Part shown: in pieces, positions 482 through 54,261 of the stretch
Position numbering within the stretch: position 1 is the first letter of the stretch
Layout of the letters: each line of letters starts with the position of its first letter
From: Thalia democratica
Lineage: Eukaryota
Direction of reading: 5' to 3'
Length of the DNA: 64,000 nt
NCBI GenBank assembly: GCA_965202585.1
Contig: OZ241826.1
Coordinates: 88,846,001-88,910,000, forward strand
The notes under the pieces: model-generated
The model's database searches: none
Seen by the model: the letters and a program-made list of their open reading frames with translations, nothing else
Told to the model about the DNA's origin: nothing
Made by a program: the position numbers and the translations under genes

Positions 482-3400
482 ATAGTATTGCCACTACCCA
501 GCCTGGAAGTGTTATCACAACTTGCTTTGAGCCAATCAAACCAGGAGGCGGTCATGCGTGTCCTCAAATCCCACGTTTCTGATTGGACGAAACAGATTGA
601 TGATTTGCTGTCGCGTGATCCACTGCAATCAACATGGTTTGAGTTGAATGTTTAAAATTTCGTATTGACTTTTTTTAATTGATAATAAATATCGGTTAAT
701 AAGTAATAACTTTATAGTTACGAAAAGTTGTTTAAAATAATCACTTTTAGTAGATATAAAATTTGTTTTATATGCTTCACACTTAATTTGCAATCAACAG
801 AGATTGATTTTGTTGATACAATACAAGTATAAGTTAAACATTGTAACTTTTTTTTGATTTTTGATTTTTTAATAAAAAGTAGTATGTGCAATTATATAAC
901 TCGATAAACTTGAAACTTATTTTAAAGTTAGTTGTGGTTAATTATCATGTATTTTGCCTTGATGAAAGAATTTATGCAATATTGATTTTTTTCTAAGCGT
1001 TCTTTTTTACAAAAAACAATATAAACTACAGTGAGTTGGGTGGAACAGATGAGATGTTGCTACCAAAACATGAGTTTGAAATGTGGCAATGTTACATCAA
1101 CGACATTCAGTCTGTTATGGATCAACTTGATTGTTAGTATTTTAAAAAATTAAAAAATTTAATTATTCAAAATTGATGTTTTTTTAATAACCTTTAGTTG
1201 TTTTTTAATTAAAATATATGCTTAAAAAAAAGTATTATTGCGAAGTTTCAAGTAGCCTTTAAATTTAATTTTTAAACAAAGTTTTATAGTGCAATTTTGT
1301 CTAAATTTAATTAAAAAAGGTATTATTTTTCAAAATCAAATACAAATATAATTTTTTGTAAAAATCTCAACCATTGTTACAAAAGTTTATGCATATCAGT
1401 ACCAGTAGGAGATTGTCTAAGTCTTAATTAAATCTTCCAATTAAAAATTTTCAAAGTTTTAATAAAAGCTTAATTTTTAAGTATAAAAGCATTATTTCGT
1501 TTAATTAAAAGCCAAAAGTAATATTACTAGTTCACATTACATATTACAAATTGTATGAACAGCTGACTCAGTGCGAGACATACTGAACAACATAGAACAC
1601 TGTGGTAAGTTGTGGATGAAATACAACAACTGCGTGTTTGAAATGGAGTGTCAGCTGAAGGAAACTCACAACAGGCTGGCTTTGTTCAACACTTTACTGG
1701 GCTGGATTGATAAAATAAAAGCTGCAGACGGTGTTGAAAACGTTATGAAATGTTAGTTTTGATGTTTGTGTTTCTAGTTTAACTTGATGTTTGTTTTCTA
1801 CTACAGCAATTAAACATGCACTTGGTAGTGAGTTAGTTTTCACATAAAAACCATACTCAGTGTGTTTTTAGGAACAGGTTTTTTTTATTTCCAAAATTTA
1901 TACACAGTTTTAAAAAAAAACTTATAAAGTTAAAATGTATCTTGATTTCGATAAGCAACAATTTTCAAGCAGTTCATTTTAGAAAGTTGTGATTGCTTTT
2001 GTTTAAAACTGTTATTTTATTTTTTCTCTAGAAAATAATATAAAAAGTAGTTCCATATAAGTTTTAATACCTTGTTATTTTTTTTACAGTTAAAAAACGT
2101 TGATGTTTTTATGTTGTATGTAAAAGGCTTTCAACAAGTAAAATTTGGTTTATTAATAATACTTTTTTAAATGTTTTGAAAAAATTATTACTTCATGTGT
2201 AAATGCAGTCATAGTAATTGTAACAGTGAGTACAGTTGACTTATTAGTTGCAAAAATTATTTCAGAATTCTTTGCTTTAAGCTACTTTGTTTTTTTATTA
2301 AACAACAACTTCTATCTCTTAATATCTATGACAAACAAAAAAACTATTAAAAAATAAATAATGAAAAAAGTAAGTTAATCAAAATTGTTCTATTTAATTC
2401 CATAAGCATACAAGTTAAGGTGTGTTATTAAAAGTAATCAAACAGATTTTCCACCACTACTGACAAGCATCAGACTTTTGTGGCAACACTCCAGTTATTA
2501 TCACCAACCTAAATGTTTCAGACACCTACTTAAAATGGTGTCTAATGAGGTTCGTTTGAACTGAAATATTTTCATTTCATATAACTGTAATATACTAGCT
2601 CAATTTAAATTTTAAAGTGTTATAAGTCGTATTAGTTTTAATCAACTTACTTAAGCTTATAGAAGTTGTAAATTATTCACTTACATACATAAATATCAGC
2701 TGTTTTTTGTAAACTAAAAAATTTCAACATAATATTTTTATATTGATAGCAGTTTTTTTTTATTTTATTGACTTTTAAAATGGAGTTATTTCAAACAAAT
2801 TATTCTCAACAACAGTTTTAATTGAAATATGTTTTAAACTTTAACATGTTTTTAGAAGTTCATTTTAAAGTATCTCTTGAAAGTTTTGCAAATGCATTGC
2901 ATGTAATTACAATTTCAATGATGCATTAGCAGCAAAAGGTCTTAAGGCAGCCTGACTTCGTTGTAGTTTTGAAAGCTGTTATATTTTATTATCCTAACAG
3001 GTGGTGTTGAAAGCGAGAGGCATGGTGAACAGGGACATGTTTGAAGACGTTGATTTTTCATACAAACAACTGAAGAAAGCGTTGAAACTTTGCGCAGCTT
3101 TTCGTGGACATTACATTGATTTTAGAGTTCGTACGATAGTAAACACCTTTATAAAAGTCTTTGTGTTTGGTAGTTTTACTACTGGTAGTAATTATTAAAG
3201 TTTTAGTCAAGTAGTAAAAATTTGAAGTATTCCCTTTGATATTTTGCGGTAAGATTCTTAGTTTTTTTTAGGATATCTTTTCTCTATAAATTATTAATTT
3301 ATTAGCTTTTTTTAGTCTTTAAAAGTATATAAAACATATACACTAAAAACATCCTAATGTGTATTATAAAAATAAAACAAAATTCACAATTTCAAAAGTT

Positions 3401-6400
3401 CATCAAAGTTTAAGAGCAGTTAGTTTTGAAATTTGCTGTTAACTATTCATAGTTCGAGATTTTGCTTGTTATTTTTTTCATACAAAACTTTATTATGACA
3501 TCATATAGGAATCAGCGGACAAGTACAACAGCGAAAGGCTGAGGAGCAACAACGAACAGATGCAGTTGCCAAGCAGCAGCAACCCCATCATCGATATTGA
3601 CATGTACGGTCCCCACGGATACCACAACTTCATCAAAATGCAGCAGCAAGTACGTAGAATGGACCAGCAACAACAAGAAGGTTTTTTTACTTGGTGTTGT
3701 TTGTTTTATCCGTTCAATCCTTTTTACTAGTCGTCAAAAGTAAATTTTTTGTTAATTTTAAGTAAAACAGGTCAGATTTGCCTTTGAAAATTATCACTCA
3801 CATATATGTAACTTTTGAAATATTGTAAGTTTTATAAAAAGTTTCCGATACAAACATATGGACCGCAAATTTTTCGGGTCAATTTTCTCGGAAATTCAAA
3901 AAATCACTAAAAATCTATCTTCTCCTTCATTTTTTGAGCTAGAGAGCTTAAACTTTCAGGAAACGTTCCTTTTATAGTTTAAAGTACTTTAAATGTTGAA
4001 ATTTCAAAAAAATTGAAAAATAAAAATTTCTGATTTAAAAAAGAAAAATAAAGTGTTTTTTTTTTTAAATAAAAATTTTATTTTTCAAAATTAATAAAAT
4101 TCCTGCATTTAATCTTCATAAAATTCAATAATACACTGTCTGTGAAAATTTGAAGAATATTGCAAAAAAATGTAGGAGGTGATAGACTTTTAGTAAAATA
4201 ATCTTTTTTCGTGGTTTAAGTTTGCGCCTTCTATTAGGAACCTATTGAGGTCACCGACTTTGATCGCTCATATCTCAAAAATTACTTTGATTTTTTCAAG
4301 CGGTTATAAATGTATGATAGCTCAGATAAAATACTATAAAGTAAGATCAACTTTTAAAAATCAAGGTGGACTCCCCTATGCCCTTAATTAGATCTACAAC
4401 CGCTTTTTTTATTTCTTGAGAACATGTTGAGATATGGTCTCAAAATCTTTTTTTTCTAATTTTATTGTCTTATGTGTAATAACTGAAATGTGCAATCAGT
4501 TTATCTAACAAATAACAAAACTCACAGACTCTGAAGAACTGTCACCGTTGTGGATTAGTTCAAGGTGGCCCTCTCGTACATGCGACAGTTGCTTCAACAA
4601 CCTGAACAATTTCGTCAACACGTGCAACGATACGCTCGACTTGCTGCTGAATTCCCGCCATTTTGCATCTTTATCAACACGTGACCAGTTTGCAGACGAC
4701 AGACTGGTGAAAATTTACGAGGTTATTATAATTAACATTACAGTCTATGACTTCATAGTTTATCTGTTTGAGTATACTTCTTCTACTTACAGAGTAGTTA
4801 GACTTTGAGAATTAAAGAGTCCTTAGTTTTCTGGATTTTTCCTAAAAACTTAGAAAACAATTTTTTTCTTAATTGTAGGTTAAACAAACCAATATTTTTA
4901 CGATAACTGTTTTGTATATGTTTTCTTTGATAAAATTTTCCTAAATACTACAAAAGCTTTCTATTTTAGTCAATAATGCTTTTTTAGTAATAATCTTACT
5001 ACCATAAAAGTTTAAATAAATGTTTTTTTCAAAACAGGCTTTTACTCTGGCAACGTCACGATTCAAGCTCGGCAACCATGACGTCATGTTGCTAGGCAAC
5101 AGTGACAATGTTGACGTCACTCAAACGAGCTTCAGCAAGTCGTTCTTCGAATACAGGAAGGTGATCAAGTCTCTCGAGCTCCAGGTAGCGGAAGTAATAA
5201 AAAACATGTTTGAAAAATCCACCACTCTTTACTCGCGTTTGAGGTAAAAATTAAATAAATCTTGATGACTTTGTTGTTCTAAATTTAGTTTGCTTGTATT
5301 TGCAAACATAAATTCTAATATCGTGTTTTTTTTTTCTTTACTTTTATCACAAAACTTTTAAGTATATGTATCTCCCTTTTATATCCTTTTTAAGGGATAA
5401 ATCCTAAATTAATCTTGCTTAATTAAAAAAAATTTTTCTGTTATTAATGAACAATAATACTTTTTACTAAAAATTTTGTTGAAATAAACTTAATAAAATC
5501 TTAAAAACAATATTCTTACACTTTGCAGTCACATGTTTATAACAAATAAGCGTTTATTTTGTAAATAAAATGTTATATGGGTATGTTTATATAACACTTG
5601 TATCCGTATTTAATTAAAAGAATTTTCTTTTTTTCTTGTAAAAGTCAACGCTTATCAAAATAACTAATAAATTATACACTGAGTTTTCTTTCACGTTATT
5701 ACTATTATTAATATTATTATTTTTTTTAAAAAACAACCTCATTTCGTTATTAATTTGTCACTAGTTTATAACATTTTTTTCTTTTTTAATTAGCTTAATA
5801 AACTTTTGATTAAGTTCACAAACAAAACAGAATAATTGAATGTTTCGAGGGCGTCATATCAAGAGAGGTGGTTCAAAATTTACTGAAAAACGAAATTGAT
5901 GAAATATTACTGAAAACAAAGGAAGATTTGGAAATAGTGGAAAATATGTTCGCAGACAAAAATGATCCGAATCACAAAAATCTTCCTGGTTTTTCCTCAA
6001 ACTTAGTCTGGGTTAGTGTTTAGTTTAAATTTAATTTTTTTAAATGCAGCAGTATTAATACATAATGTTTTGAAGGGAATTTAAATAACATCTTTAAAAT
6101 AACTGTTGTATTTTTTATCTATTCTTTAGTTTTGCTCAAATATGTTATTATAGTTGCAGAATATTTATAAGTTTATTTATAAGTTTTGATGAAATTTATT
6201 TTATAATACAGTTTTAACATATGATATAGTTTTACTCAGTTTGACCAGAAAAGTTAACTACAAATTACTGCAAAATTAATAATTGTTTTACGATTTTATT
6301 AAGGATTTTCTTGATTATAAACAAGCAAGTTTTCTTTCAATGTTATTTAACGTTACGCTTTTACAAAACTGACCCATGAATCAATCCTCTTTAATTTTAA

Positions 6401-9400
6401 GTTACAATATGTTTTGTTTTTTCTGCGAAATTATCGTAAGTAAAATGTTGCTTTCTCAGCTCTTAATATTTATCACAAAACTCGTAAGAACATTTAGGAA
6501 ATTATTATTTTTTAATTTTTATCAAACATTTGAAGTTTTTTTACTTCTAAAATACTGTACATTCCATAAGACAAATATACAATTATTTTTTGTTTATTGT
6601 GACATTTTCAAATTGTGATTATGAAACTCTACTAAAATCCAAATTAATAGAATCCGTATGTTTCCGATCCCTCCACCCAAAATAATACATTTATCAGTGT
6701 ATTATATGTTTTTATTTTTCGGAAAAATTATATTTATTAAATTCTTTCAAGATATTTTAAAGCAGACTCAGTTTCGGTCAAAGACCTCTTCAGTGCTTAT
6801 TTGAAAATTCTTATTCAAATAAAATTATATTAATGATAAATTAATAAGTTCGCACACGCAGGCGAAATCATTGAAGCGTAGAGCCAGGGAGCCAATCACG
6901 TCGTTGAAGCGATGCTGCCCTCAAGTGTTGGAAAGTGAAATTGGTTGGCAGCTGAGGGACAGATTGAACAAGATACTGAACGAAATAAGCATGTACGAAG
7001 CTGAACAACTGAGGATATGCGTTGAACAAGCTCAATCTTACCATTTCAAGTTTGACTGTTTGCATTATAAATGTACTTTAACTTACCGTTACAAATTTTA
7101 GAAAATGGTTTTGTGTTTGTTTTAGTGTTTAACGTCTGGAACATAGTTTCCCAAACTGGGCCAAGTGGCCCCTTTGGGGGCATGAGGTCATAGTTTGAAA
7201 CTTACTTGGGTTATTTTGGAATTGATGGTGAACAGCATAAAATAGGGTCTTAGGCGGTTTAATGGTAACTTTTTTGGAGGTGCTTTTTTAATTTCTTTAA
7301 AGAGGGCATTTTGAGAAAAAGTTAGGAAAACCCTGGTTTAGAAAAATCTCATCATTTTAAGCTTCATGATTTTCTTGGTATAAAAAATTTACCTCATAAA
7401 AGTAGTATAGTTGCTTCTAATATTATATGTGTTTTATTTTTAGGAAATGCCCCCTGAACAAGGTTTCCTAAATAATTAATATAAAAAATTATTAAGAGCT
7501 GCTGCACTTGTAAAGTTTAAAAGTAATGTTTTACTTTGAAAACCTTTTGACTAAAATAAATTGCATAAAAATAAGGATATGTTCAAAGATTCTATACACA
7601 AACCACTTTTAAATATAAATCAATTAAATAGTTTACTTAGTTTAATAATAGTTTTAGAATATGCTTGTATATGATTTTTTATATAAAAAAGATCATGTAA
7701 AATGTAATTACTAAAATATTATAAATAGTATAATTGCAGGAACGATTTGAAGCAACCAGTGTTGATATCAACTGATGAAGGCAAATTGCAAGTCAATATG
7801 AACGTTGAATTCACACAAATCATAAGAGAATGCCAACTTTTGTCAAAACCGCCATTGAATGTAATTTGTAGTTGTAGAGTGATTTTCAATAAATTACAAA
7901 AATTCATTGATTTTAGCTCATCATATTTTGCTTGATACTAGATAGATCATTATTGATCGTAGAAGTTATTTACGATCTAAGAATTATTTTTTTCAAGTTT
8001 TGATCTCGCTTGTTAAAAATAGTTGTTGGTACATTCTAATTATTTGATTTGTTTACATAATATTGTAGTTATATAAGTTTAATCTAGTAAACTTAGTTAG
8101 TATTGGACAATTTTTCAAAGTTTATAAGATAATCTAACTTAAAGTAACTGTATTTTTACTATTCCAATATTCAAGTTCTTAACGCAATGTCACAAAATTA
8201 TAAACACTAAAGTTTAGAACCAATTTTTAACACAACGGTTCAGACTAAATGCTTTTCGAAGATAACAATTTTATTCTGATTTTGGTGAATGATAACTTTT
8301 TTATTATAACAGGGAAACTATTTGTAATTGAAACAATTACTAATTTAGTTTTATACCAAAAACTTTAATTAAATAAAGTTATTTCCAGTGAAATAATAAT
8401 TTGAGTGTAAGTCAGAAAAGTTCAAAAAAAATCTCAATTTTTTTTCAAATGAAAAGTTACTAAAAGTAATAGGAAAAAACTATGTTCAAATTTCATAGAA
8501 TATTTATCTGATCTATAAAATACTTAGGACATTTTAGACCAGGGTTTTCCAATTTTTTTTTTCAAATTGCCTCCTTTACAGAAATTAAAAAGCTATTGCC
8601 GCTCAGACAAAACTACAATTTAAAACAACTAAGACTTTTTTTTTGCTTTTCATCTGCAAATCAAGAATGTCTAGTGCAGCTTTTACCAAAGTGGGCGGTA
8701 TCGCCCCCTGGCGGCGATTTTAGTAAGTTGGGTGGGGGACAAAATTATTAAAGGGGCGATTTTGAAACTTACACTAGATATTCTTGAGTTGCAGGTGGAG
8801 AACAAAATAAAAGGTCTTAGGTATTTTACATGGTAGTTTTGTTGGAGGGGGCAAAAGTCTTTTCAATTTATTAAAAGGGGCAATTTGAAAAAAAAAGTTT
8901 GGGAAACCCTGGTCTAGTGTAAGTTTCAAAATTTAAAAATCACCCCCTTCTGCCCCTTTACTAATTATTGCCCTTAACTTACTAAAATCGCCAACGTTAT
9001 GAAACCCTGTCCTAGACTCTAAACTTTGAATGTAAAGGAAATTATATATGAGTAAACGTCCTGCAACTCACCTAGTACTAGCTAATAGTTTATTTTTATA
9101 TTCTCAGTAAGTTTGAAAGTAGTTATACACTAGTTAATGAAAATACCAAAATTTAAGTATCTAGTACCACCAAGTTAAAAGAGTCTTTTATAAAGTATTT
9201 TGTTATTTAATTGTGTTAAATAAAAGGTATTTTTTTTTAAATAGATAATCTTTAGAGAATATTAAATCATAGTTGCTATAAGAACTAAATAAACAAAAGT
9301 CAGGAAAACAGAAACTATTTGCAGTTACTAGGTAGTAAATAGTTGTTTTTTGATTTAAGTGTGAACCTAAATTAGTTTTCTCAAATGAAAGTTAATTTGA

Positions 9401-36400: not shown

Positions 36401-39400
36401 TCTGCGTGAAATTGAAGCAAAATATTTCTTTTTCTATTTACACATTAATAATATTTTGATGCAAAAAACAGCTGAAGAAGATATATCTTCAACTCAACAT
36501 GTATCAAAACTAATGCTTTCAACAAACTCTGTTTTATCAGAAGAAAAAGGCAAACAAGTTTTTGAAAATAAGAATAAAACGACTGTTTTAAATTTTTCTG
36601 ATTTAGAACATATGAAATCTTTTGAAGAAACAGTAAGTTTGTGATATAAAAACGATTAAATGCAGTTTATTACAGACATAACGTTTTAAACACTTAATTT
36701 TTTAAGTTTTGTAATGCAATACTTCTGACTTGTGTTTAGACTTTCACAATATTTAACAAATAGAAGCTGATTAACTGTTTGTTGCGAGTTATTGCCAGTG
36801 ATGATCAGTTGGAAGGTTTCGAAGCTTTAGGACTTACAATTGACCAGGTAAGAATTTTTTATAGGAAGCGTGTTAAAACTAAAGCAAATGTAAATTCATC
36901 AATACCAGCAATAAATAAATTATAATTATCTAAAAATATTTTCGTTTTAAAACTAACTCTCACTTAAATCTTACTTTAAGTAACCTGTAATAGAAGTAAA
37001 GAATTTTTACACTTTTGTTCATGTTAGAGTTAAATGGAGCTTATATTAAGAAAACTATTTTTATAGATGAAAAATCTAGTTGTTTCGAGCTGTTGTATGG
37101 ATAAAACACAGCTGGTTATAGACAAAAACAATGACTTTGTCATACCAGATGATGAAAACACAGTAGTTATTAAATTACCAGAAAAAATTGACACATATCT
37201 GCTTGAAGATATGAAGAAAAATATACTCGATGGTAATTTATTTGGTTTTTAGTATAAGATGTGTTTATTATCTATCATTTAATTACTTACAGGTTTTAGC
37301 AATCCAAACATAATTTGTAATGATTCTGCATAAGTTATGCGATTGTAAAAATTAAAAAAACTATCATATTATAAATAATATAACTATAATACTAATAATA
37401 TAACTATTATTTTGTTCAGTTCCTGACTTTTTTTTAAACAGAAATAGATGCATGCAAAACATTTAATCATTTTTTGTTTTACAGGCAAGCACTTAGTGCT
37501 GGAGAATTACAATTCACACAACTGTGTCTACTTCCAGTCACTTATTGAACGGTCAACTATCAAGGAAGATGATGATCTTTTAACTGTTAACTTTAATAGT
37601 GAAGTTTTGAAAGTACAAGAAACTTTTAGGTTAGATTAAAATGAATACATGTAATTTTACATCTAAAATTATACCTCTGAAACACCTTATAGTAATGCTT
37701 TTATTTTTTGCGGTCGATTAATATTAATACGCGACTTTATTACGACTCAAAGTATATCTCTTATAGTGGAAATAGTTTATTAGAAATGTTTTTTATAGCA
37801 ATCACCAGAAAAGTTTGTTTTCCGTCATTACAACTAGTTGTGCGGAAGATAACTAATTGATTGGTGGGTGTTTTAGTTTGTTCTTAATAGAAATAAAAAC
37901 ATTTTAAACAGATTAACATTGAAAACCAAACAAGAAAGTATCAAAAATTTCCACCCTGAATTACTGTCCTCTGCAGTCGTTTTCAACGTTGACTACGATT
38001 TCAAACAACTACATGTGAGATGGTCTAACTTATTTCGATTTTTTTAAGTATTTTAACATTTTAACTTTAGGAAAAACTGCTAAATGTTGCTGTACAAAAA
38101 CTGCGGCCGAAACTTTTCAAGCAAAAATGTCAATTGATAACGAAGATGAATAAACAAAAAGAAAAGTTGGTTGAATTTAACAGCTCACTGTGTAGAGTTT
38201 TGACCGAGGAGAAGCCAGAAAAGGATAATGAAGAGTTTACAACATCAGTTACCAAACTTGTTGATGAAAAAACAAATGTATGAAGTTTATATTAGAAATA
38301 GTATTTATATGTCAAAATAGATACCGTAAAATTTATAAAGTTTTAAAGAAACCTGTACTAAAAGATAGCTTTCTTTTTATTTTTAACTTATATTTTACTG
38401 TGTACTAAAAAGCAGATTTAATTACTTTTGATCTTTTTGTAGGTTGAAAAATCATTAAAGGTAACAGAAGACTCAATAAAAGAAATCGACAAAATAATCA
38501 AAGGATATCAGCCAATAGCATTCAAGGGTTCTATGCTGTACTCTGTATGTATGAGTGTTGCAAATATATCTGAATACTACATTGTGAGTTAAATCGTAAC
38601 TAGTAATGAAAGTTTTAGTTGTAACTTGTAGATAATACTTCCTTTACTTAAAGTAACTTAACACTTTTATACTCACGTAGGAAGCTCTTTCTCAGCTGTT
38701 GTTAACTTATATCAAACATAGCCGTTATTAGTTTATTTTTCAATACCTAGTAAAACAATTTTTTTTAACATAGAAATAACTCATTTATAGGTATCACAAA
38801 CGTTCTTTTTGAAACTGTTTGAATCTGCTTTGAGTGTAGAAACTCTAGTAAAAGAATCACAACGATCTGACAAGGACCAAACATCTAGTCCAGATGAGTT
38901 TCAAGGTTTACGCTTAGAATTATAAATTTTTCAGAGAGTATTTTTTATTTTTCAGTAAGCATAAAAAACTTTAGAGCATATCGATACGAACAACACTTTA
39001 ATCTTTACGTTGATAGTACATTTAGATTATTTTTTTAATTATTTCTTAAAAAAGTTCCAACTCAGAATAATACATTTGTGCTTATTCTACAAAAAAAAGC
39101 AGTTGTGTATTTTTTTTTTGTTTTTACTATTTGTTAAGATTTTGTAAAGAAATCTATAGTTCCTTGTTTAATATCTGTAAAGTTTAAATCTAAACAGCAG
39201 AAGAAGTAGTAACTCCACAATCTATATCAGTAAACGATGTAAGTTACGATGAAGCTAATTATCATGAAGTGGAAGAAATAAGTTTGAATTTGACAAGAGA
39301 AATATTTTTGTATTTACACGGAAGGTATGTTACATAGTATCATTACTTTGTTTTAAGCTTTTTCTGAAAAATAAACAATTTAAGATGAATTTTATCTTTA

Positions 39401-42400
39401 AATCATAATTCGTAAAAAATGACCAGTTCACAAAAATTTTTCGGAAAGTGTGCACAGAAGTTTGCATACAAATTTTAACAAGTAGTAAGAATACTGCTAA
39501 ATAAATATATAGTACGTCTTTAATTGTTTTCAAAACAAAATTTTGACAGTTTTTTAAGTGGTTTTAGCTCACTGTTTACAAACAAAATAACTAAGTTACA
39601 GTAAGAAAAAACTAGAAGTACAAAAGTCTGTATTAAACTCTATATAGTTTTATTTTAGTATGTATTGTATTGTGCACAGCTTAATAAAAGTTAATTACTA
39701 ATCTAGGTGATTATCTTCATTTTTTACAGAGTCGTTCCGCATCATCGGCTCGTTATGACGTCATACTTCATGATGACGTCACAATCCAGCCAACTACCCG
39801 ATCCTCCGTTCACTCCTGAAGAACTAAAAATTTTCATGAGCAGTGATGTTGAACAAAAAGTAGAAACTTGTGATGAAATGAAGGAACCTGATTGGTTGAG
39901 TGAAGAAATTTGGACAATGTTACTGGCTGCTTCTAACTGTTTGGATGGAATTTGCGAGAAAATATTTTCGAATTATAAAGTAGCTGAATTGATGAAAGAG
40001 TGGTTTTTGAGTGAAAAACCTGAGGTACATTGTTAACTAATACTTGAAATTAAATCTAAAGTGTTTTTAAATAAATCGAGTATTTTAATAATAGTTCTTT
40101 ATATGCTATACTTATTATTATTAAGCTTAACAAACTGTACTATTAATACTTTTTTTTATCATCAAAGACTTATAATTACCTGATTATTGATAAGTTTAAT
40201 TTTTATTGCATTCCGCCAAAAGCAATAGTAGAGTTTAAAGACTTTTAAACTTATAATTTCAGTTTTGTTTGAATATTAAGTAGCAATAAAAAAATTAGAA
40301 AAATTTGTACTTAGTAAGTTTTTAATTTAGCAATAAAAAGAAGTTAATTTACAGACAGAAGAATTATCGGTATTTGATGGAACTAGGTCTCAAAGAAAAT
40401 GGTTTTATAAACTTTTGTTGATAAAAATAATGAAGCCTGAAAGACTTGAATACTGTATGAAGCTATATGTAGAAAATAATATCAATTTAATTCCCGATCT
40501 TAGACAAGTATGTTTATAAGCATTTTAACTTTATCAAGACCTAGCTCAGACTATATTAACTTGTTCTATTTAGGTTTTTTTTAAACAAACAAAACTTAAA
40601 ATGCTCTATTTAGTAAGTAATTTACACATTTATCATGGTTTTAGTATATAGAATTCATCAAATTAAGTTTAAACAGTAAATAACACTGTAGATATCACTG
40701 GACGGCTTGTTAAGAAAAGTTGCAAAATTCGGAAGCATTGTTTTTGTTACGTCAAACGATAGAAAATATGAAACTGAAAAAATTGAAGACTTAATCAAAA
40801 ATATTTCAGAAAAGTTAGTTCCTACTGTTTGTAATAACTTGTTTTTATAGTTTTTTGTCTTAGCTCAAAAATATTGTTCGATTTACTGAAATGTAAAGAG
40901 CTTATTTAAATGATAATAGTGTAGAAATTAGAAACTTTATTTACTATCAGGTTTAAACCTGGTAGTAAATAAAGTATTTAACTTGTACATTATTATTAAT
41001 TAATAACTTGTATAATAACTAACTTTGTTAGTATATATTTAAAATATTTTTTTTGTAATGTAGATTTTTTTTAAGGAAAAAAATACCTTTTAAAGAAGTA
41101 AGCTTAACTGATGAAAATAACTTTTTCCAAATCATCAATGACTCCCAAAATGAAAACTCTTGGATATTAATAAACCATGTCGAAAATTCTCCAGAAAGGT
41201 AATTACAAATTAAGCTCTGTAAATTAATAAAAACTAAAAGTTATTTGTGAGCTATAAACTCAGTGTAAAGGCAGTTTCAGTTGCTTAACTAAAAAAACTT
41301 TATTATAAACAACTGCTTTAAAATAAGTTTTAAGACCAAATTTATAACTTTTATCTTGTGGCTCTTAATGCAGTTATCTCGAAGAAATCAACAGCTTACT
41401 TGAGAGCAAAACAGACAACGAATCCAGTGTAATATGGATACATGTTGGAAACAATAACAAGTTACCTCATAAACTGTACGGTGAATATTACACAGTAACA
41501 AAAGAGTACCTGTGTGATGTTGCACAAAAAGTTGGTATATTAATAAAATACACTCGAGTAAAAATCATTATGAAACAGTGAATAAAGTCAGTATAGTTTA
41601 ATATTAATTTTAAATTTTTAGGTTGCAATCAGCGCTTCAACAAAAGTTGAAAGTGCTAACTTCAATGAAACTTTGTTCAACTCTTACGCATCGGTATGTT
41701 TTGAAATTTTTAGTTTTGATCTTTTTGTTTAGTGTAAATAACTTGGCCCTTTTTTAACTCAACTGAAACTATGGTAATAAATATTTTTAGTAAAAATATT
41801 TTGACAGAAAGCTGTTTTATTTTTATTTATGCAAATATAAGTAAACTAGACTTAAAGCAGTGTTCTGAAATATCAAATATAAAATGATATAAAAACTGAA
41901 AGTATGTACAAAAATGCAAATAAAAATGTTAATATCTTCAACAGTTTATAGAAGTTTTGTAAAAAAAAATATTTTAAGTATTAAAAGCAATGCCCAACCT
42001 TTTTTTAAATTAAAATGTTTAATAGATCTTTTTTGAGCAAAGCAAGTTTGTTGACGACCCGAAAGTAAGAAGAAATATATTCGGGTTGTGTTTCTGTCAT
42101 TCCGTGCTGATTTGTCGACTAAATTCTGGTTACTATGGAAACAAAGTTAATTGTCCAATCACGTTGTCGCAATTGCAAAGTGCGGCTAGTTATGTTGTTG
42201 ATGAAAGTTAGTAATTCAAACATATAATTAAGTATTTTAGTTATGTTGTTTCTTCAAGATAGCAATTACACATATGTATTGTATTTTTTAGCTCTTTAAG
42301 AACAACTTTTTTTTTCATTTGCAAATAGCAATTTAAACAAAAGATTTAAAAGATAAAATAAATTTACTAGGTGGAAATGATGAAAAACTGACAGATTTGC

Positions 42401-45400
42401 TTGCTAATATTTACTGTGAAAACTTTAAATCACCTACTGAACAAGTTAGCTTCATTATGTTTCAATATAAATTTCAGTAAAAGTACATGTTCAACAACTT
42501 TATTACAATCTTATACTAAATTTAAAAAATCTTCAAATTTGTTTTAAGTCTTACACGACTTCTATAATGTAGTTTCTAAAGAGTTCATAATATTTTTTTC
42601 TAGACACACGTCACTTACTTGTTCGATGACGTAATGAAGCAAGTTTCACGTGACGAATCGGTTGTCATTGGTGACACGTGCGTTCTGCTGCCCCCTGATG
42701 GACTCCCTAGTGACGGTCAGTTGACCTGAAAACGAGTTTGAGTTTTTTAAATTAAATATAAAATGGGAAAGTAATTAATCTACTTGGTAAAAAGTGTTTA
42801 TATATTTTTTTTCAACTTTACTAAAATGATCGTATTTCACAAACAAAAGTATATGCTCGACACAATTATTTTATATATTAGTAGTTTTGTTTTAATAACT
42901 CTACAAAGTTACTTAATTATATTATATTAACCAACAGAACTTGTATCTTGGCTGGAAACATCTTTATCCGATGACTGTTTTGATGAAGTCATTGGTAAAG
43001 ATGCTTTGAGTCATTTCATAAAAAATCGTTCTGAATACCTGATAGACTTATTTGGCAGGCTCGGTGAAGAAACATTAATCAGTTAGTTTATTACTTTGCT
43101 GTATTGAGTAAATTGCTTTAACTGTTTTTGTTACATTAGCAAAACAAAGCGTTTTTATTCGTTTACCTAAAGTTAAGACGACTTCAATTTCAAATTTAAA
43201 CTAAAACATCTTCGTATATTTTTTTTACAAACAGCTTATTTGAATACAGTTATATACTTTAGTCATTCAATTTATAAGTTGAGTAATTTTTATTTTATTG
43301 TTTTTCGAACAATCTTTTAGTGTCGGAGGAACTAAATAAAGATGCTACGCGCGATGATTCGCTTCAGTGGGCAATTGACACGTGCAACGAAAAATTCCCG
43401 CCATTTTTGAACGTCGATGAAAATCACGTGATTAAAAACTATAGTTTTGTTTACCATGCGCCTTCAGAAATAAGTGTGGACTCACATGCGAAACTTGAAA
43501 GAAAAGTTCCCCATTTACCTGAATCAATAGGGTTTGTTGTTTAAAATTAGTAGTTACCCATAAAAAGTTTCAAAAAACTTTAATTAATGAATATTTAAAC
43601 AATCGAAATTAGACCTTTTAAGCCAGCTTAACTTCTTGTTTTACAAGACAACCAATACTTTATGTGAAAAAAAATGTAGTTTTTTATTTAATTTGCTAGT
43701 GTCAAAATTGCATACGTCCTAATCCAACTATTGTTAGTATTTAAGCTGTTTAGTATATTTAAAGTTACTTTTTCTATACTATAACATCTAAACTTGTTTG
43801 CTTGCTTAAAAACATCTATTTGACAGACTACATGTAGCAGAGGCTTTTAGGTCTATATACTTACCAAATAACACTTTACCATTAATATTTAAACAAAACA
43901 TTTTATTAGGTTTGTTCTCCATCAAGAATGTACGGCGTACAATGAATTAATGCGTAAGTGTAGAAACAGTATAAACAAAATCTCATCTTCTAAAGCAAAT
44001 CAAAGCGAAGCAGCAAATATGTTGAGAAATAATTTTGTACCAAAAGAGTGGTTAGTTTGGTTTTTTTAGTATAACATTTCTTCCATGTTTAACATTGCAC
44101 TAAAATATTACATTTTTGTAAATTAAGGTTATTAAGTTAAATTTTGATTAAATGATTTAATTATCATATATCTTTATGCAACTTTTTACGAACAAATTTT
44201 AGGCTGGTGAATCAAGACAAAATGACTCTCTTAAATGAATGGTTAACAGAAATAAATTATAAGTATTTACAACGACAAAAATGGATCAATCAAGGAATGG
44301 TTCCAACGAATAATCACAATCCAGTTGTCAGTTTTATGATGTTACTTTTAATAACTTAAATTATTTGTTTTACACCTTAGACCCCGATTATAAGATTTTT
44401 TATCCAATTGCGACTGCTTGTAAACTTAACTTATATTTAAAGAATTAATTCTACTCAAACAAAAAAACTTTCAACTAATTTACAGGGTGTTCTACAACAA
44501 TTAGATTTAGGATCTCTATTCAATCCTGGTGCTATGATAATTGCGTTGTGCCAAGAAAAAGCTGTTTTACACGAAGTTCATATTGAACAGGTATGTTTTA
44601 GTTTATATAAAATCGAGATTCATTAATTATTGTTTTGTAAAAATTGATTTAAAATTATTAAATCTAGTTTTACAAAGGTTATTTCAACAGCGATACTATA
44701 AATCTGAATTATTAAACTGAGTATATTTTTGTTTAGTCGAATACAGAGATATTAATTTGGTCTTTAAATTATCTTATACTTAGGCAGTATCGAATTACCA
44801 AGTTCTACATTTTTTTTAAGTTTTCAAATAGCTACTAGCTCTTACTTTCTAAACTTTATTGAAAACAACAGCGTAACTTTCAACAGATAACAATAAGAGG
44901 TCACATATCAAACGTTGCAGACGACCATCCTGACTACGAAGCAGGAATTAGTGTGAAAAATTGCTATTTAAACAGAGCGGAATGGAACCATGCAGAAAGT
45001 AATTTTGTTTATATGTATGATATTACATAAAAGTTTAAATCTTTTGAAAAACTACTTTTAACAATTACTTTTTATTAAAAATTTATTTACTACAAATGAA
45101 GAAGTATAAGTTTAGTATGTATTACGAATAGTAAAATAAGTTAGTGTATATAGTTATTAAGCCAAAATGTATTACAGATTTACTAGAAACAAACGCTAGT
45201 GCAGTTGAACATGAAATCAGTTTGTATATTTATCCATTTTACAAGCAAGAAGATGATACACAAAACACAAACGTTGTCAATATTCCACTATTTGTCAACA
45301 AGGTTAATATTTTGTTTTTCTTTTCTAAACTTAGCTCGTAGCTCGAAACAAATGGTGTTTTACGTACTTTTTGTGGTACTCTACAAAAAAAAAAGATTAC

Positions 45401-46962
45401 TTAAAGCCAGGTGTTAGTAACTCCATAAACTCATTAAGTAGTTTTAAAATGTTTTAAACTGTTTAAAAACTATTTATTGAGTTTACTAAATAATGGTTAT
45501 ATCGCTACATTTTCACGATCAAAGGTTTTAACGACAAATAACATAAAACAAATTTTTAGACCAAAAACAATTTGATTTGCTACGTTGAACTTCCCATGCT
45601 TAAGTCAAAACAAAATGTTTCTTACTTGAGGGGAATCCCAGTCGCTACGAACGCGTACCTGACTCTGAAACAACTCTGTGACGTCACTGTAGATAACAAC
45701 CAATCGGAGACAGTAAGCGATGATTGCCAATTGATGAGAAACGTTAACTCGAGAGTTCGATTCAGTCTTGCCGTGGAATCAGCTAAAAATCTCAATGAAC
45801 TGGGTCAGTTTTCTGTTTGTAGCTATAAATCAGATGTTGCACTTTTAAAACGAGCAATGCGTGACCAAAACCGGTACATTTATTTTTTGTTTCAAAGTAA
45901 CTATAGAACTATAACTTTTTTTATTAAAAAAAACTTGTTTTACATTTATTTTGTAACCTACCAAAACAGCTTGTTTAAATTCAAAAGTAGCTAAACTTGT
46001 TTTTCTTTTAATTTCAGAAGAGAAGTCGTTTGAAAAAGTCGTAAGCAAAGAAAACCTGGAAGACAAATTGCTTGATTCAGAGAGTGAACAAAGTGAATCG
46101 GAAACAAGCAGAAGTTCAAACTTTGTAGAACAAGAAACTCAAAGTGTAGATGAAGCAGGTGACGGTGGAGAAGTCGAAGCCGATCCTTCAACAGACCAAG
46201 TCGAAACGAAACCTGTTGGAGGTGAAAGCGAACCAACGATGGAGTTGAACGCCGCAGTGAAAGAAGAAGACGATGAAAACGCAATCTCGTCGAAATCTAA
46301 TGACAGCTCAGAAAATTCGGATTCAAGTTCGAACGAATCAACAAACGAAAAATCACAATCAAATAGATCACAACAAAATAAGCCTTTTAATCTCAACAAA
46401 GACAACAAATCTAGCTCAAATGAGAGATCGCCAAGCTGTGAAAGTTTTGATGAAATTGAAAAAGAATTCGACGATAAGATGAACACATACTCATTAGTGA
46501 AAAACAACGCACAAACTGATGTAAGATTATATACTAATTTTAATGTATGAATTTTTTATATGACGTATTATTTTTCAGAGTTCAGGAACATTTTTGAAAG
46601 AAATACTTAAGACTTCAAGCGAAGAGGATAGGTTATTTTTATTTAATTTCAGTAAATTTTAGCCTATAGTTCATATATTTGATTTATCAATCATATTAGT
46701 TGCCGTTAATGTTCATTGTAGTCAATTATATCTTATAATATAGATATACTTATAACATTAATCTTTCACCTTAACATTACTATTTATATTGGTTTTTAGG
46801 TTATGTAGTGTAGTATTTTAATGATAAAAAAGTAAATATAATAGCATCTTTAAAATTGTTTTTCTAAACAAAAGTTTGTTATTTTTAAAATCTTAATGAC
46901 TATGGATTTCTACTCTTTTGAAAACTGTATTTATTTAAATTAACAGGAACTCAGATGAATGA
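482..46962 (+). CDS. Divergent axonemal-type dynein heavy chain (5'-partial; ~97 exons; ~5,120 codons in window), predicted ATPase-degenerate
   Basis: Manually phased GT-AG exons give one uninterrupted frame (15,363 nt, ending ...RNSDE-TGA): 482-636, 1032-1132, 1563-1751, 2446-2549, 3001-3126, 3509-3680, 4528-4721, 5038-5243, 5831-6011, 6862-7049, 7740-7860, 11402-11569, 12093-12264, 12651-12808, 12925-13071, 13155-13310, 13471-13604, 13932-14075, 14342-14585, 14820-14879, 15088-15242, 15332-15488, 15863-16054, 16363-16572, 16786-16918, 17096-17230, 17461-17608, 18074-18236, 18510-18666, 19009-19134, 19431-19599, 19962-20178, 20589-20792, 20956-21078, 21285-21407, 21720-21835, 22028-22092, 22173-22225, 22379-22534, 22781-22899, 23274-23464, 23745-24009, 24118-24278, 24538-24706, 24969-25143, 25424-25573, 26158-26277, 27275-27397, 27598-27817, 28004-28470, 28633-28927, 29142-29349, 29434-29488, 29696-29905, 30195-30352, 30558-30633, 30689-30845, 31148-31304, 31841-32049, 32457-32667, 33035-33218, 33416-33493, 33772-33918, 34182-34373, 34715-34805, 34983-35087, 35337-35546, 35992-36213, 36472-36632, 36764-36847, 37067-37232, 37485-37629, 37912-38014, 38071-38277, 38443-38583, 38791-38905, 39198-39324, 39730-40024, 40355-40507, 40692-40813, 41076-41198, 41374-41530, 41622-41693, 42026-42206, 42371-42444, 42604-42715, 42938-43081, 43321-43531, 43910-44050, 44203-44326, 44486-44590, 44887-44998, 45178-45302, 45560-45803, 46018-46520, 46579-46631, 46947-46962. 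Dynein hallmarks occur in the correct order: tail (LPLP..., HVSDWTKQI, NPTLRRRHW, RRRFPLFYFLSNEDVL), FQYGFDYQG, GNLFKGL, EWKDGVL, GPPGSGKS, KKLVCFVDD, LLWKHECEWVY, MTBD (VTWKKGAKRIMANIDRFL), FGLCFCHS, VLHQEC, LGSLFNP. A few donor choices are ambiguous by 3-6 nt. Confidence 0.93.
3781..4383. mobile_element. Partial non-autonomous DNA transposon ending ...CCCCTATGCCC-TTAA
   Basis: Intronic block of distinct composition with the CATATCTCAAAAA motif (also at 61232-61245 and 61368-61383) and a TTAA-flanked right end. Matching left end not found; left boundary approximate. Confidence 0.45.
7142..7335. mobile_element. hAT (Charlie-like) MITE, CAGGGTTTCCCAAACT family
   Basis: Termini CATAGTTTCCCAAACT ... 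AGTTAGGAAAACCCTG; flanks GTCTGGAA/GTTTAGAA (6/8 TSD); internal similarity to 8677-8911. Confidence 0.75.
8540..9009. mobile_element. Outer hAT MITE (reverse orientation) interrupted by a copy of the same family
   Basis: CAGGGTTTTCCAA ... GAAACCCTG; flanks TTTTAGAC/TCCTAGAC. Segments 8540-8676 and 8920-9009 are reverse complements of parts of the inner element. Confidence 0.75.
8677..8911. mobile_element. Inner hAT MITE with perfect 8-bp TSD
   Basis: CAGCTTTTACCAAAGT ... AGTTTGGGAAACCCTG flanked by GTCTAGTG at 8669-8676 and 8912-8919. Confidence 0.85.
10096..10147 (+). ncRNA. Minimal type I hammerhead ribozyme motif (Penelope-like/retrozyme type), one core A missing
   Basis: CCTGC-CTGATGA-GTCC-TAAAAA-GGAT-GAA-CCGG-TC-GTAGG: stem I CCTGC/GTAGG, core CUGAUGA at 10108-10114, stem II GTCC/GGAT, palindromic ACCGGT stem III, predicted cut after C10137. 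Confidence 0.75.
11766..11997. mobile_element. MITE with internally repetitive terminal inverted repeats
   Basis: Left arm GATCAAAATCCAGCCGATCAAAATCCAT, right arm GTGGATTTTGATCGGGTGGATTTTGATAG (~15-nt units, about three per arm) around an AT-rich core. Confidence 0.7.
15332..21407 (+). other. Dynein N-terminal region 2 / linker (DHC_N2-like)
   Basis: APERWSSLK, KSLWKY...W...W, KTWDVF...NPTLRRRHW, ELKIENLLKNVEEKW, VQRKWVKLDDVY, EIRTALPKEANVF, CEEALLSNMDKHRRRFPLFYFLS, VSLWLSKLQ. Confidence 0.85.
22781..25143 (+). other. AAA1 module with degenerate Walker A and Walker B
   Basis: Flanks align with canonical AAA1 (FQYGFDYQG; GNLFKGL; HLPKEFLDTFR; QGFTNAKQIS). Walker A position reads SSKLNGRS (23356-23379; canonical GPAGTGKT). 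Walker B reads WLQLSGVDK (23783-23809; canonical WGCFDEFNR). Confidence 0.85.
26158..28470 (+). other. AAA2 module, P-loop retained
   Basis: ALLVGGPQSGKSS (P-loop 26191-26214), EWKDGVL, PNNEKVQLPASMRVVWE; canonical TPATVSR reads NPGFISE (27778-27795). Confidence 0.85.
26801..26849 (+). ncRNA. Minimal type I hammerhead ribozyme motif (Penelope-like/retrozyme type)
   Basis: GTA-ACTGA-CTGATGA-GTCC-TAATAA-GGAT-GAAA-CCGA-TC-TCAGT-C-TAC: stem I ACTGA/TCAGT, core at 26810-26816, GAAA at 26831-26834, predicted cut after C26840. Confidence 0.8.
28633..29905 (+). other. AAA3 module, P-loop and Walker B retained
   Basis: HVVGPPGSGKSSLI (P-loop 28687-28710), KKLVCFVDDV, ELIRQH, YFFSLHDL, LLWKHECEWVY. 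Confidence 0.9.
30558..32667 (+). other. AAA4 module with degenerate P-loop
   Basis: EYNNEN...MMFYDVTIDTVCRL...HALLLGNGTPVHA (30803-30826; canonical GVGGSGKQ); NESAWNMFVEKV; LPNLFNRMQTINFGDW. Confidence 0.8.
33035..36213 (+). other. Stalk coiled coil and microtubule-binding domain
   Basis: CC1 (KFVENFVKIY...EELVLEE), MTBD (EPCPEVEELLACVILIL...DVTWKKGAKRIMANIDRFLNQLSKFDE...NLFEWV...RVRPLK), CC2 (LEMRLAELEVTFESATVDK). Confidence 0.85.
36764..45669 (+). other. AAA5, AAA6 and C-terminal domain (divergent)
   Basis: QLVIDK, FRLTLKT...FHPE, GYQPIAFKGSMLY, KLLLIKIMKPERL, SWILINHV, FGLCFCHSVL, VLHQECTAYNELM, NFVPKEW, LDLGSLFNPG, NRAEWN, NIPLFVNK. Confidence 0.8.
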
Positions 46963-47174
46963 AATGAAAACAAAATTAAAAGCTGTGACTAAGTTACTTT
47001 TAAACAATTATTTAAAATTACACTTTTGATTTCAAGCTACCTAAAAATAGCTACCTTTTTTAATTATGATGTAAGTTTGCGTCTATGTTTATTTTAATTT
47101 ACAATGATTTCAATTTTTTTTTCTACTTCTTTTTTGTTAATCTTACCAGAATGTTTTATTGACATTTATTTAAG

Positions 47175-47180
47175 AATAAA
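47175..47180 (+). promoter_or_regulatory. Candidate polyadenylation signal of the dynein gene
   Basis: AATAAA about 210 nt after the stop codon. Weak evidence in such AT-rich DNA. Confidence 0.25.
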
Positions 47181-48468
47181 AAATTATCACTAACCTTTAA
47201 AAAAATTAACTATTCTATTATTTTTAGATCATTATCTTTAACGCTACCTACTTTGTTATGAATACTTTACCTTTTACTACTTGTTTTCATAATTTTTAGT
47301 TTTAACCTAAATATCTTAAGCTTTTATTTTTTTAAACAACTTAATTATTTTCATTTTTAGCCTAATCTATAATTTCTAAAAAACTTTTAATTTTAGAGGA
47401 TAAATATATTTTGAAATTTTGTAGAGAAAATTGTTCATATTTATTCTTCAACTACTGTTTGCCATTTAGATTATGAAATAAACTTGACTTTTTTTTACAT
47501 TTGGATAGTTAACAAATTTTAAACTAGTATAAATACTTTCTGAAGCTGTATTGATAAATGTTTATAAAAGACTTATTTATAACTTATGTTAAGCACGCAA
47601 ATTTTTTCAAAGTTTTATTTTACAAGTGTTTATTTAACTATTACCAATTTACAAAATGTAACATAATCAAGTAGAAGTATAATACTACACTAAACTATAT
47701 AAAAATAAAATGTAATTTTGAAGTGTGTATTTGAAAAAAAGAACCGGCCCTAACGTAGTTTTAATAACAGATATAGCTGAGATTTGTTAATAAAAAAACT
47801 ACTAAGGTCTAGTTGGCCACTATGGCTATAAGCTTTTAATGCTTGTATTATATAAATTCGTTTTTTCTTGATTACAAATATTTCTATTTTCACTTTAAAA
47901 TAAGCTAATATAACTTCGCTCAATTTAAAAGATTTCAAAGAGCTTCAGCTAACCAATTCAGTGGTTTAACAAGTTTGCTGACTGACATCTGTAAGTGATG
48001 ATTACCCAGCAGTAATAGTATTTTAAACCGTTTATAGTTTTGCAATAAACTTAAGTCACTGAATCGTTTACTTGATGATAATCATTTTGTAAAGTAAGTC
48101 GTAAACGTTATGACGCAGTAGTAATTTTGTTACCAGAGTAAGCCTGAAAAACACCAAAAATAATTTCTAAGTTTTTTGTGATTTTATAAAACAAAAACTT
48201 TAAAAACTATTTTACTGAAATAAGTGGTTTTTGGTTTATGTTTACGCGCTTTACCTTAAAATGAAACAGTAAGAGCATTTTAAAACTTTATTTTAACAAG
48301 TTTTTTTCTATTGAAATGCTGATATGCTTAAACATAGTTTAAAAGTTTTCTAGTTTCAAGAAACTTTAAATTGACTGTGTTTGTTTGTAAAAGATCTTTT
48401 TTTCAATAATCATTTATTTACTATAAAATTAAAAATTGCGGAACAAAAACTTTTGATTTGATTTTGTA

Positions 48469-53700: not shown

Positions 53701-54261
53701 TTTACTCTTTTTCTTTTTTGAAAAAAAACAAAAACCAAAGTATATGATGATCCAGAAGTTAGTTTTGTTGATCACAATAGATTTACTAAATGTTTAAGTA
53801 TAACTAACTTATAATAAATTTCAAAATATTCTCTAACAAAAAAAAAATTCAAAATAAAACAAAATAATTTCGACATAAATAATAATCAAGAAATAAGTAA
53901 TTAGATGATTATAGAACCAAAAACTAATGATAATATATGAAAATAATAATAATAAAGTATTTTATTGATAGGCAGCATAATAGATTTTGCAGTAAATTAA
54001 AGATACAAACATGTAGTTTACAAGGTAAAACATTTATCACTAAAATGAAAAAGGAACTTGATTAAATAATAACATTTATAGATCAAAGCAATACGTATAT
54101 CAAAATGACAGTAAGAGTAAGAAATGCTGTTAAATATATGTTGATTATAAAACATTAATGTTAAGTTCGTGTAATTATAAAATATTTGAAAAAAAAAAAA
54201 TTAAATGGAACTACATCGACAATGTGAGCTATCTCAACTATCCGACTTCAATATTTCTCGA

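Follow-up and report, generated by a model that had tools for sequence, protein, structure and literature searches.

A transcribed dynein heavy chain gene of Thalia democratica with degenerate AAA1 and AAA4 sites, a candidate non-motile dynein

Dynein heavy chains (DHCs) that have lost the motor site and are still under selection have only now come to be recognised, through DNHD1 in human infertility and through DNAHX in 2025, and non-motile DHCs are as a kind already published. Here we describe a further candidate, a multi-exon DHC gene that occupies the first 46.5 kb of a stretch of 64,000 nucleotides from Thalia democratica (assembly GCA_965202585.1, contig OZ241826.1, positions 88,846,001 to 88,910,000 of the forward strand), which is called the window below and to which all plain coordinates refer. 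Three divergent classes of metazoan DHC, numbered 11, 12 and 13, were distinguished in a survey of 636 species (Kollmar 2016, PMC5100056). Class-11 is DNHD1, class-12 has a tail like that of class-3 (DNAH5/8) and an aberrant stalk that carries insertions and has no typical microtubule-binding domain (MTBD) or coiled coil, and class-13 has a tail like that of class-4 (DNAH9/11/17) together with a longer AAA5 and, at the C-terminus, a low-complexity extension that is unique to it; classes 12 and 13 were predicted to heterodimerise, and the ATP sites were not analysed (PMC5100056).

DNAHX was found in sea-urchin sperm, is 5,272 amino acids long and is described as a non-motile chain that branched off from the DNAH5/8 type (Chai et al. 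2025, bioRxiv 10.1101/2025.01.18.633724). Its stalk and MTBD carry insertions that are thought to abolish microtubule binding, a further insert called PS2 (a beta-hairpin plus a helix) sits in AAA4S between H6 and H7, and the sea-urchin protein retains Walker B and the GK of Walker A (bioRxiv 10.1101/2025.01.18.633724). Together with a second, unidentified heavy chain it makes up dynein-X, and by cryo-electron microscopy this partner has a canonical extended stalk and no insert in AAA4S (bioRxiv 10.1101/2025.01.18.633724). DNAHX is probably the class-12 of Kollmar. DNHD1 has by its description diverged strongly, and its AAA1 is poorly conserved and has no Walker-B residues (bioRxiv 10.1101/2025.01.18.633724). 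Genetics shows that sperm flagella and nodal cilia depend on it, which means that a "dead" heavy chain can be essential; the papers on DNHD1 variants give no domain or motif detail.

The gene in the window lies on the + strand, has some 105 exons and about 5,200 codons, and is a member of the DHC superfamily with tail, linker, six AAA modules, a stalk with MTBD between AAA4 and AAA5, and a C-terminal domain. Pfam scans made exon by exon found DHC_N1, DHC_N2, AAA_6, Dynein_AAA_lid, AAA_7, DYN_lid/AAA_lid_1, AAA_8 and MT in collinear order, which bears out the full architecture proposed in a first-pass annotation made from the letters alone, and the gene can be aligned with five paralogs from its own genome as far as the C-terminal ..YPFYK motif. 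The register of the catalytic motifs was taken from the AAA1 blocks of 16 canonical DHC genes of the same genome, every one of which has GPAGTGK at AAA1. At the same aligned positions the window gene reads SSKLNGRSE against the canonical GPAGTGKTE in Walker A, and QLSGVDKL against CFDEFNRI in Walker B. The sensor-I loop reads TTNDLNFFSE against TMNPGYAGR, and the sensor-II arginine is replaced by glutamate, in a register that is anchored by a downstream ..AG; a stretch of about 25 residues is inserted in the AAA1 small domain upstream of VLSRESLK. The AAA2 arginine finger reads FISE against TVSR, and the P-loop of AAA4 is lost (GNGTPVHA), while AAA2 (GGPQSGKS) and AAA3 (GPPGSGKS, FVDD) are intact. 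Canonical motile DHCs have GxxxxGK[ST], DE and a sensor-II arginine in AAA1 and an arginine finger in AAA2, and the window gene has none of these.

All six long motifs are on the + strand (Table 1), and both the losses and the retained parts had been read from the letters by the first-pass annotation, which placed them correctly. The kept parts are confirmed by a Walker A scan, by the Pfam MT domain and by the spacing of the stalk, with 383 residues from AAA4 to the MTBD and 173 from the MTBD to AAA5, like canonical chains. A canonical AAA1 exon hidden elsewhere, which would have changed the picture, is excluded within the window: all six frames together hold two Walker A motifs, those of AAA2 and AAA3, and the canonical AAA1 blocks match the modelled AAA1 exons alone.

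The gene is transcribed, spliced and under purifying selection. The RNA comes from a marine metatranscriptome run (X1), the spliced contigs of which are 92-95% identical to the window. One of them splices 23271-23463, 23744-24004 and 24113-24219, and includes the exons of Walker A and Walker B. Another splices 24538-24706, 24969-25146 and 25427-25571, of which the first is the sensor-II exon (the modelled exons are 24538-24706, 24969-25143 and 25424-25573), and further contigs cover 22394-22531 and 27598-27821. The lengths skipped in the RNA contigs are exactly those of the modelled introns when an ambiguity of a few bases at the junctions is allowed for, and four splice junctions around AAA1 are thereby observed as modelled. 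Words of the 3' end of the gene are also present in RNA runs from two studies. Between the RNA relative and the window 18 differences are listed, 10 synonymous and 8 non-synonymous, with 22% of the sites being synonymous, which gives a pN/pS of about 0.23. The exon 28004-28470 and its orthologue on metagenome contig L001 (66% amino acid identity) have a dN/dS of 0.15 over 153 codons. The claim that the gene is not decaying stands on this splicing and on these ratios of about 0.15-0.23.

To judge from the sequences of its relatives, the loss of AAA1 and AAA4 is old and family-wide. A search of 1.84 billion protein representatives with the exon 28003-28536 yielded just four short unnamed fragments, and these led to contigs of unrelated assemblies (L001, L002, L053, L054 and L055-L058) with genes that are collinear with the window gene at 28-66% identity and have few, large exons. 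Further protein-homologue, ESM Atlas and metagenome locus searches gave extra members of the family, none of them named and none with long open reading frames. When segments of the relatives were searched back into the genome of the window, the window gene was the best match for three of three from L053 (P0009 included) and for the single one from L002. In L053, Walker A of AAA1 reads VASSNFN--ILSEL with a deletion of four residues, Walker B reads CFHRVDNL, the sensor-II arginine has become alanine, and the AAA4 P-loop reads GEGCPVLSS; kept are the P-loops of AAA2 (GPAGCGKS) and AAA3 (GPLGCGKS). All relatives have K or E at the position of the AAA2 finger. In a tree made from AAA1 only, the window gene groups with L053 at 100/100. 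The AAA1 losses in relatives and the purifying selection on the gene are points that the first-pass annotation had proposed to check.

The best-conserved stretch between the window gene and its relatives is the MTBD exon with the coiled coil preceding it. Identity is 58% in the MTBD exon (L053, L055, L058) and 61% in the coiled coil just upstream, against about 31% in the P-loop exon, and microtubule binding appears from this to be under selection in the family. In AAA4S of L053 (14762-15049, contig ERZ25067582) there are about 19 extra residues (..VTKKDEELIGRKGARGRWLM..) between H6 and H7, the site of the PS2 insert of DNAHX, and inserts at this place in dead dyneins may have arisen more than once. 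Just past the start of AAA5 the same contig has acidic stop-free stretches, unconfirmed as exons, which are possible inserts.

The window is AT-rich, with about 27% guanine plus cytosine (GC), and a splice-aware Viterbi model trained on it gave 107 exons and 5,226 codons in one frame, with a median exon of 147 nt and a median intron of 252 nt. The earlier figures of about 97 exons and 5,100 codons were thus close, but the single frame is forced by such a model and is alone no proof; the real support for it comes from the homology-supported blocks, none of which has a stop or a frameshift, and from the four junctions in RNA. About ten tiny modelled exons are doubtful fillers, and the modelled exons 55 and 56 (26632-26860), which lie in a high-copy repeat, are probably spurious. 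The sole in-frame stop of the model is a split codon at 7057/7102 that adjoins a spurious filler exon at 7102, and is an artefact of the model. The first modelled exon (482) has no start codon, and tail exon 8 aligns with about residues 470-520 of outer-arm beta chains but stands at about residue 370 of the model, so the 5' end of the gene is probably upstream of the window, together with some 100-130 N-terminal residues. From AAA5 to the C-terminus the protein is strongly diverged (the SLGQGQ and TNEPP motifs are lost) and still collinear with canonical DHCs. Beyond the canonical C-terminus follows an extension of 176 residues, acidic, rich in serine and asparagine and of low complexity (24% D+E, 39% S/T/N/Q), in a run of 197 codons free of stops, against a local frequency of 0.081 stops per codon, and with good GT/AG sites. 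Between 5 and 10% of the words of this last exon are present in the RNA runs X1, X4 and X5, and the splice into it is a prediction. The stop codon is most likely the TGA at 46548, and not at 46962 where the gene had first been taken to end.

As for its origin, we consider the family to be old and strongly diverged and to have branched off from the outer-arm beta heavy chains of the DNAH9/11/17 type; most likely it is class-13 (DHC13) of Kollmar, with a probability of roughly 0.6. A profile of 12 family sequences, reaching from the AAA2 lid to AAA3 (256 positions), was compared with all chains in PDB, and it scored 129 bits with DNAH17, 127.5 with DNAH9, 107 with the Chlamydomonas beta chain and 101 with that of Tetrahymena. 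Class-4-alpha chains followed at 98-101 bits, and then DNAH6 (87), DNAH2 (73), DNAH10 (64), DNAH1 (61), the Chlamydomonas gamma chain (59), DNAH5 (46) and cytoplasmic dynein (44). Single exons of the window point the same way: the best PDB matches of the AAA1 exon are the beta-type chains 9y6s_5c and 9e5c_7b, and five of the six DHC matches of the AAA3 exon are beta-type. We also typed paralogs of the same genome through PDB, and those at C8:38.98 and C1:91.58 were of beta type and those at C5:37.90, C8:37.82 and C9:17.12 of alpha type; the AAA1 stretch with Walker B and sensor I has long high-scoring pairs with only two paralogs, both of them beta-type (54 bits), and the same two are the next-best matches of P0009. 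In the tail, exon 8 matches exclusively outer-arm beta chains in PDB (residues 468-523), if weakly (E ~0.04), and exon 9 matches outer-arm chains of several types, collinear at 520-606. It is the combination of outer-arm-beta affinity, outer-arm-type tail, typical stalk and low-complexity C-terminal extension that fits class-13. The novelty of the gene, which had been said to depend on orthology, is reduced accordingly, as it belongs to a pre-existing divergent metazoan DHC family.

Several observations weigh against this placement. Identity over the motor is about 21% to beta-type and inner-arm chains alike (2,808 columns, five paralogs), and a tblastn search of the modelled protein against the paralogs gave almost no similarity. 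In the AAA1-only tree the family stands between the cytoplasmic and the axonemal dyneins (88/80), and with the window gene alone its placement is unresolved with an end branch of 8.3. Approximately unbiased (AU) tests on that tree gave a log-likelihood difference of 4.9 (p 0.11) for the family with the beta type and of 1.8 (p 0.18) for the family with the alpha type, so that the tree rejects union with neither outer-arm type and gives a beta origin no support. A profile of the AAA3 lid (66 positions) gave a mixed and uninformative ranking, headed by inner-arm chains and DNAH5, and for a segment of one relative the next match in the genome was an alpha-type paralog. The longer AAA5 of class-13 is not demonstrable, with 748 residues from the AAA5 start to the AAA6 anchor in the window gene against 682-783 in noisy paralog models. 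The last splice junction (45803/46018) and the tail region 7057-11400 are without RNA support, and the assignment to class-13 is made from the published class descriptions and the affinity to solved outer-arm beta chains.

That the window gene is instead the orthologue of DNHD1 (class-11) is unlikely but deserves serious weighing. Class-11 is present in metazoans, DNHD1 is divergent and has, in common with the window gene, lost the Walker-B residues of AAA1, and the orphan-like deep position in the AAA1 tree, the equal distance to the canonical classes and the few, large exons of the relatives would all suit such an origin. The genome contains a second divergent DHC (G000:C5:45013571-45019976; AAA_6 25.6 and 24.5 bits, AAA_7 P-loop 44.9 bits) that is not matched by the proteins of the window family. 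This second gene may represent class-12 (DNAHX) or class-11 (DNHD1) in the genome, but under a DNHD1 origin of the window gene it could be the class-13 or class-12 gene instead; a whole-genome search with Pfam MT found neither of the two divergent genes at genome-level E-values. The family profile, however, clearly prefers outer-arm beta chains. The low-complexity C-terminal extension, the trait that Kollmar gives for class-13, and the tail exons that match outer-arm chains speak for the same side, although indirectly.

Rather improbable, in our opinion, is a divergent orphan lineage outside the published classes. The four short fragments from 1.84 billion proteins, the lack of a named relative in the further searches and the ambiguous position of the family in the AAA1 tree would agree with it, but the family is present in several unrelated assemblies, three of its traits match the published description of class-13, and it is hard to see how a widespread metazoan class would have gone unnoticed in a survey of 636 species. 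We regard an orthologue of DNAHX, and by that probably of class-12, as very unlikely. A length above 5,000 residues, a degenerate AAA1 and a marine animal are what one would expect of it, but DNAHX branches from the DNAH5/8 type and the family profile gives DNAH5 46 bits against 129 for DNAH17, its stalk and MTBD are aberrant and carry insertions when those of the window gene have canonical spacing and the MTBD is the best-conserved segment, an alignment of the window gene has nothing inserted between H6 and H7 of AAA4S in place of PS2, and both Walker motifs that DNAHX keeps in whole or part are lost in the family; the DNAHX orthology was rejected on these grounds. It is hardly credible that the gene is a pseudogene in decay, or a copy of an outer-arm gene that degenerated recently and in this lineage only, and this reading was rejected too: the loss of every catalytic motif of AAA1 and the one split-codon stop of the model could be taken for decay, but the AAA1 exons are transcribed and spliced, dN/dS is 0.15-0.23, relatives at 28-66% identity have the same losses, and the homology-supported exons have no stops, that of the model adjoining a spurious filler.

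In dyneins that move, hydrolysis in AAA1 drives the remodelling of the linker and the release from the microtubule, and mutants of the Walker A lysine or the Walker B glutamate are immotile; AAA2 holds a structural ATP and AAA3 is regulatory. AAA1 of the window protein has lost its P-loop, both acids of Walker B, sensor II and the arginine that acts in trans, so it can hardly bind or hydrolyse ATP, and by its motifs the protein cannot run a power-stroke cycle driven by AAA1. What we infer is a heavy chain that binds microtubules and is non-motile. This is read from motifs, and AAA3 might still hydrolyse ATP, which counts against it; the AAA1 and AAA4 losses shared with relatives that keep the MTBD support the structural or regulatory role that the first-pass annotation had suggested. 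AAA4 would be empty, and AAA2 and AAA3 may still bind nucleotide. The outer-arm-type tail would join the chain to a two-headed axonemal complex, and the conserved MTBD on a normal stalk also argues for such a setting. Binding to the neighbouring microtubule without cycling, the protein could serve as a static tether, a brake or a registry element, or else as an assembly or transport scaffold or carrier in cilia or sperm flagella, where we would expect it.

The predicted partner is the class-12/DNAHX heavy chain, with which it would make up dynein-X. Kollmar's pairing of classes 12 and 13 fits the partner seen by cryo-electron microscopy, with its canonical extended stalk and no AAA4S insert, and the family is for this reason a concrete candidate partner of DNAHX. 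That class-13 really is the second heavy chain of sea-urchin dynein-X is possible but doubtful; dynein-X would in that case be a heterodimer in which both chains are AAA1-dead and go back to the outer-arm alpha/beta pair. We hypothesize that in such a heterodimer DNAHX would not bind microtubules and the class-13 chain would do so through its conserved MTBD, and that the whole would be a nucleotide-insensitive tether or carrier and not a motor. Should the gene truly be of class-13, class-12/DNAHX is its predicted partner and it is a candidate second head of dynein-X, and it would supply the analysis of ATP sites that is absent from the 2016 classification.

The features of the window are collected in Table 1. 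The element in the AAA2 intron is a very high-copy, transcribed repeat, with a summed contig depth of about 145,000 against about 100 in the flanks in the runs X2/X3 (organism A, probably DNA), and of 407 in the metatranscriptome. No Rfam family reached its gathering score in the window, the repeat with its earlier-noted hammerhead-like motif included. A second haplotype is also present in the X2/X3 runs: at 24315-24448 it has other sequence in place of some 133 bp of an intron, and at 25180-25260 it has 17 other letters in place of 79 bp. The same runs have several coding variants at 23298-23355, a short way upstream of the degenerate P-loop, and the locus is highly heterozygous. Between the metatranscriptome contigs and the window (21900-27850), 29 of 68 differing places are A>G and 11 are T>C, an excess of A>G that could be plain divergence of a related population or may include A-to-I editing. 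A canonical outer-arm beta-type gene (DNAH9/17-like, C1:91.58 Mb), one of two in the genome, shares its chromosome with the window gene, which we take to be beta-derived as well, and is found 2.7 Mb downstream of the window; this may go back to an old local duplication or be a coincidence. From 47000 to 64000 the GC content of the window falls to 23-24%, the + strand is without a long open frame, no homology was met with in passing, and the sequence looks intergenic or repeat-rich.

Table 1. Features of the window, with positions counted from its first nucleotide and the evidence for each.
Feature	Position	Strand	Evidence
DHC gene within the window	482-46550	+	gene model, collinear Pfam domains, stop codon
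Tail exon, DHC_N1 motif ..IRLLWQHSSYY..	2446-2549	+	Pfam DHC_N1 positions 113-151, E 5.7e-6; PDB match to I1-beta tail residues 320-354
Two outer-arm-type tail exons (5038-5243, 5831-6011)	5038-6011	+	Pfam DHC_N1 positions 276-319, 324-386
Linker exons (DHC_N2)	16363-19599	+	Pfam DHC_N2 positions 5-45, 193-237, 284-332
AAA1 exon, destroyed Walker A SSKLNGRS (23356-23379)	23274-23464	+	paralog alignment, spliced RNA contig
AAA1 exon, destroyed Walker B QLSGVDK (23789-23809), degenerate sensor-I loop TTNDLNFFSE (23945-23974)	23745-24009	+	paralog alignment, Pfam AAA_6 positions 77-154, RNA contig
AAA1 large/small domain boundary exon	24118-24278	+	Pfam AAA_6 positions 164-207, RNA contig
AAA1 small-domain exon, sensor-II region VLSRESLK (24606-24629)	24538-24706	+	paralog alignment, RNA contig
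AAA2 exon, intact Walker A GGPQSGKS (26191-26214)	26158-26277	+	motif scan
High-copy repeat inside AAA2 intron	26676-26900		summed contig depth
AAA2 exon, arginine finger lost, FISE (27784-27795) replacing TVSR	27598-27823	+	gene model, motif scan, RNA contig
AAA2 lid and AAA3 exons, kept Walker A GPPGSGKS (28687), Walker B FVDD (28888-28899)	28004-28927	+	Pfam Dynein_AAA_lid, AAA_7
AAA4 exon, lost P-loop GNGTPVHA (30803-30826)	30689-30845	+	motif scan; relatives read GEGCPVL(A/S) there
AAA4 large and small domain exons	31841-32667	+	Pfam AAA_8 positions 98-162, 173-229
Stalk: CC1, MTBD, CC2; MTBD exon 34182-34373, DVTWKKGAK at 34278	33035-35546	+	Pfam MT positions 108-165
AAA5, AAA6, C-terminal domain; ..LFNPG.. 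at 44516, ..YPFYK at 45231	35992-45803	+	alignment; weak AAA_lid_11 match
Predicted last exon, C-terminal extension and stop codon	46018-46550	+	GT/AG sites, composition

Among solved structures the closest relatives, by the profile and the tail exon, are the outer-arm beta chains (DNAH9, DNAH11 and DNAH17, and those of Chlamydomonas and Tetrahymena), with which the window protein shares an axonemal-type Walker B in AAA3 (..DD..) and the C-terminal ..LFNP.. motif. Canonical beta chains are motors with GPAGTGKT, DEFNR, the sensor-II arginine, the AAA2 arginine finger and the P-loop of AAA4, whereas the window protein is only about 21% identical to them over the motor. Class-13 is as far as described the nearest match, being a metazoan DHC that has a very divergent motor, shows next to no similarity to canonical DHCs in TBLASTN, and is still a full-length, bona fide gene and not a ghost gene. 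The window gene also has the low-complexity C-terminal extension, by a predicted splice; as to a class-4-like tail, the observations are the presence of DHC_N1, the weak match of exon 8 to beta chains and the broader one of exon 9 to outer-arm types. Beyond Kollmar's account of the class, it adds a dead AAA1 and AAA4, a lost AAA2 arginine finger and a strongly conserved MTBD.

With DNAHX the gene has in common that it is an oversized, axonemal-type heavy chain of an aquatic animal, with a non-catalytic AAA1 and a proposed non-motile function. It differs in being of the DNAH9/17 type and not derived from DNAH5/8, in the complete loss of Walker A and Walker B, of which DNAHX keeps the latter and most of the former, and in having a typical, conserved stalk and MTBD and no AAA4S insert, in contrast to the PS2, stalk and MTBD insertions of DNAHX. 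DNHD1, the orphan heavy chain of vertebrates, is likewise highly divergent and without the catalytic Walker-B residues in AAA1; compared by its description, it differs from the window family in the outer-arm-beta affinity and the class-13-type C-terminal extension of the latter. What we add to these is a description of the dead sites at the level of a family and a testable link to dynein-X. The window gene is a clean third example beside DNHD1 and DNAHX and has another pattern of loss, with AAA1 and AAA4 dead, AAA2 and AAA3 kept, and an MTBD that is, unlike that of DNAHX, conserved.

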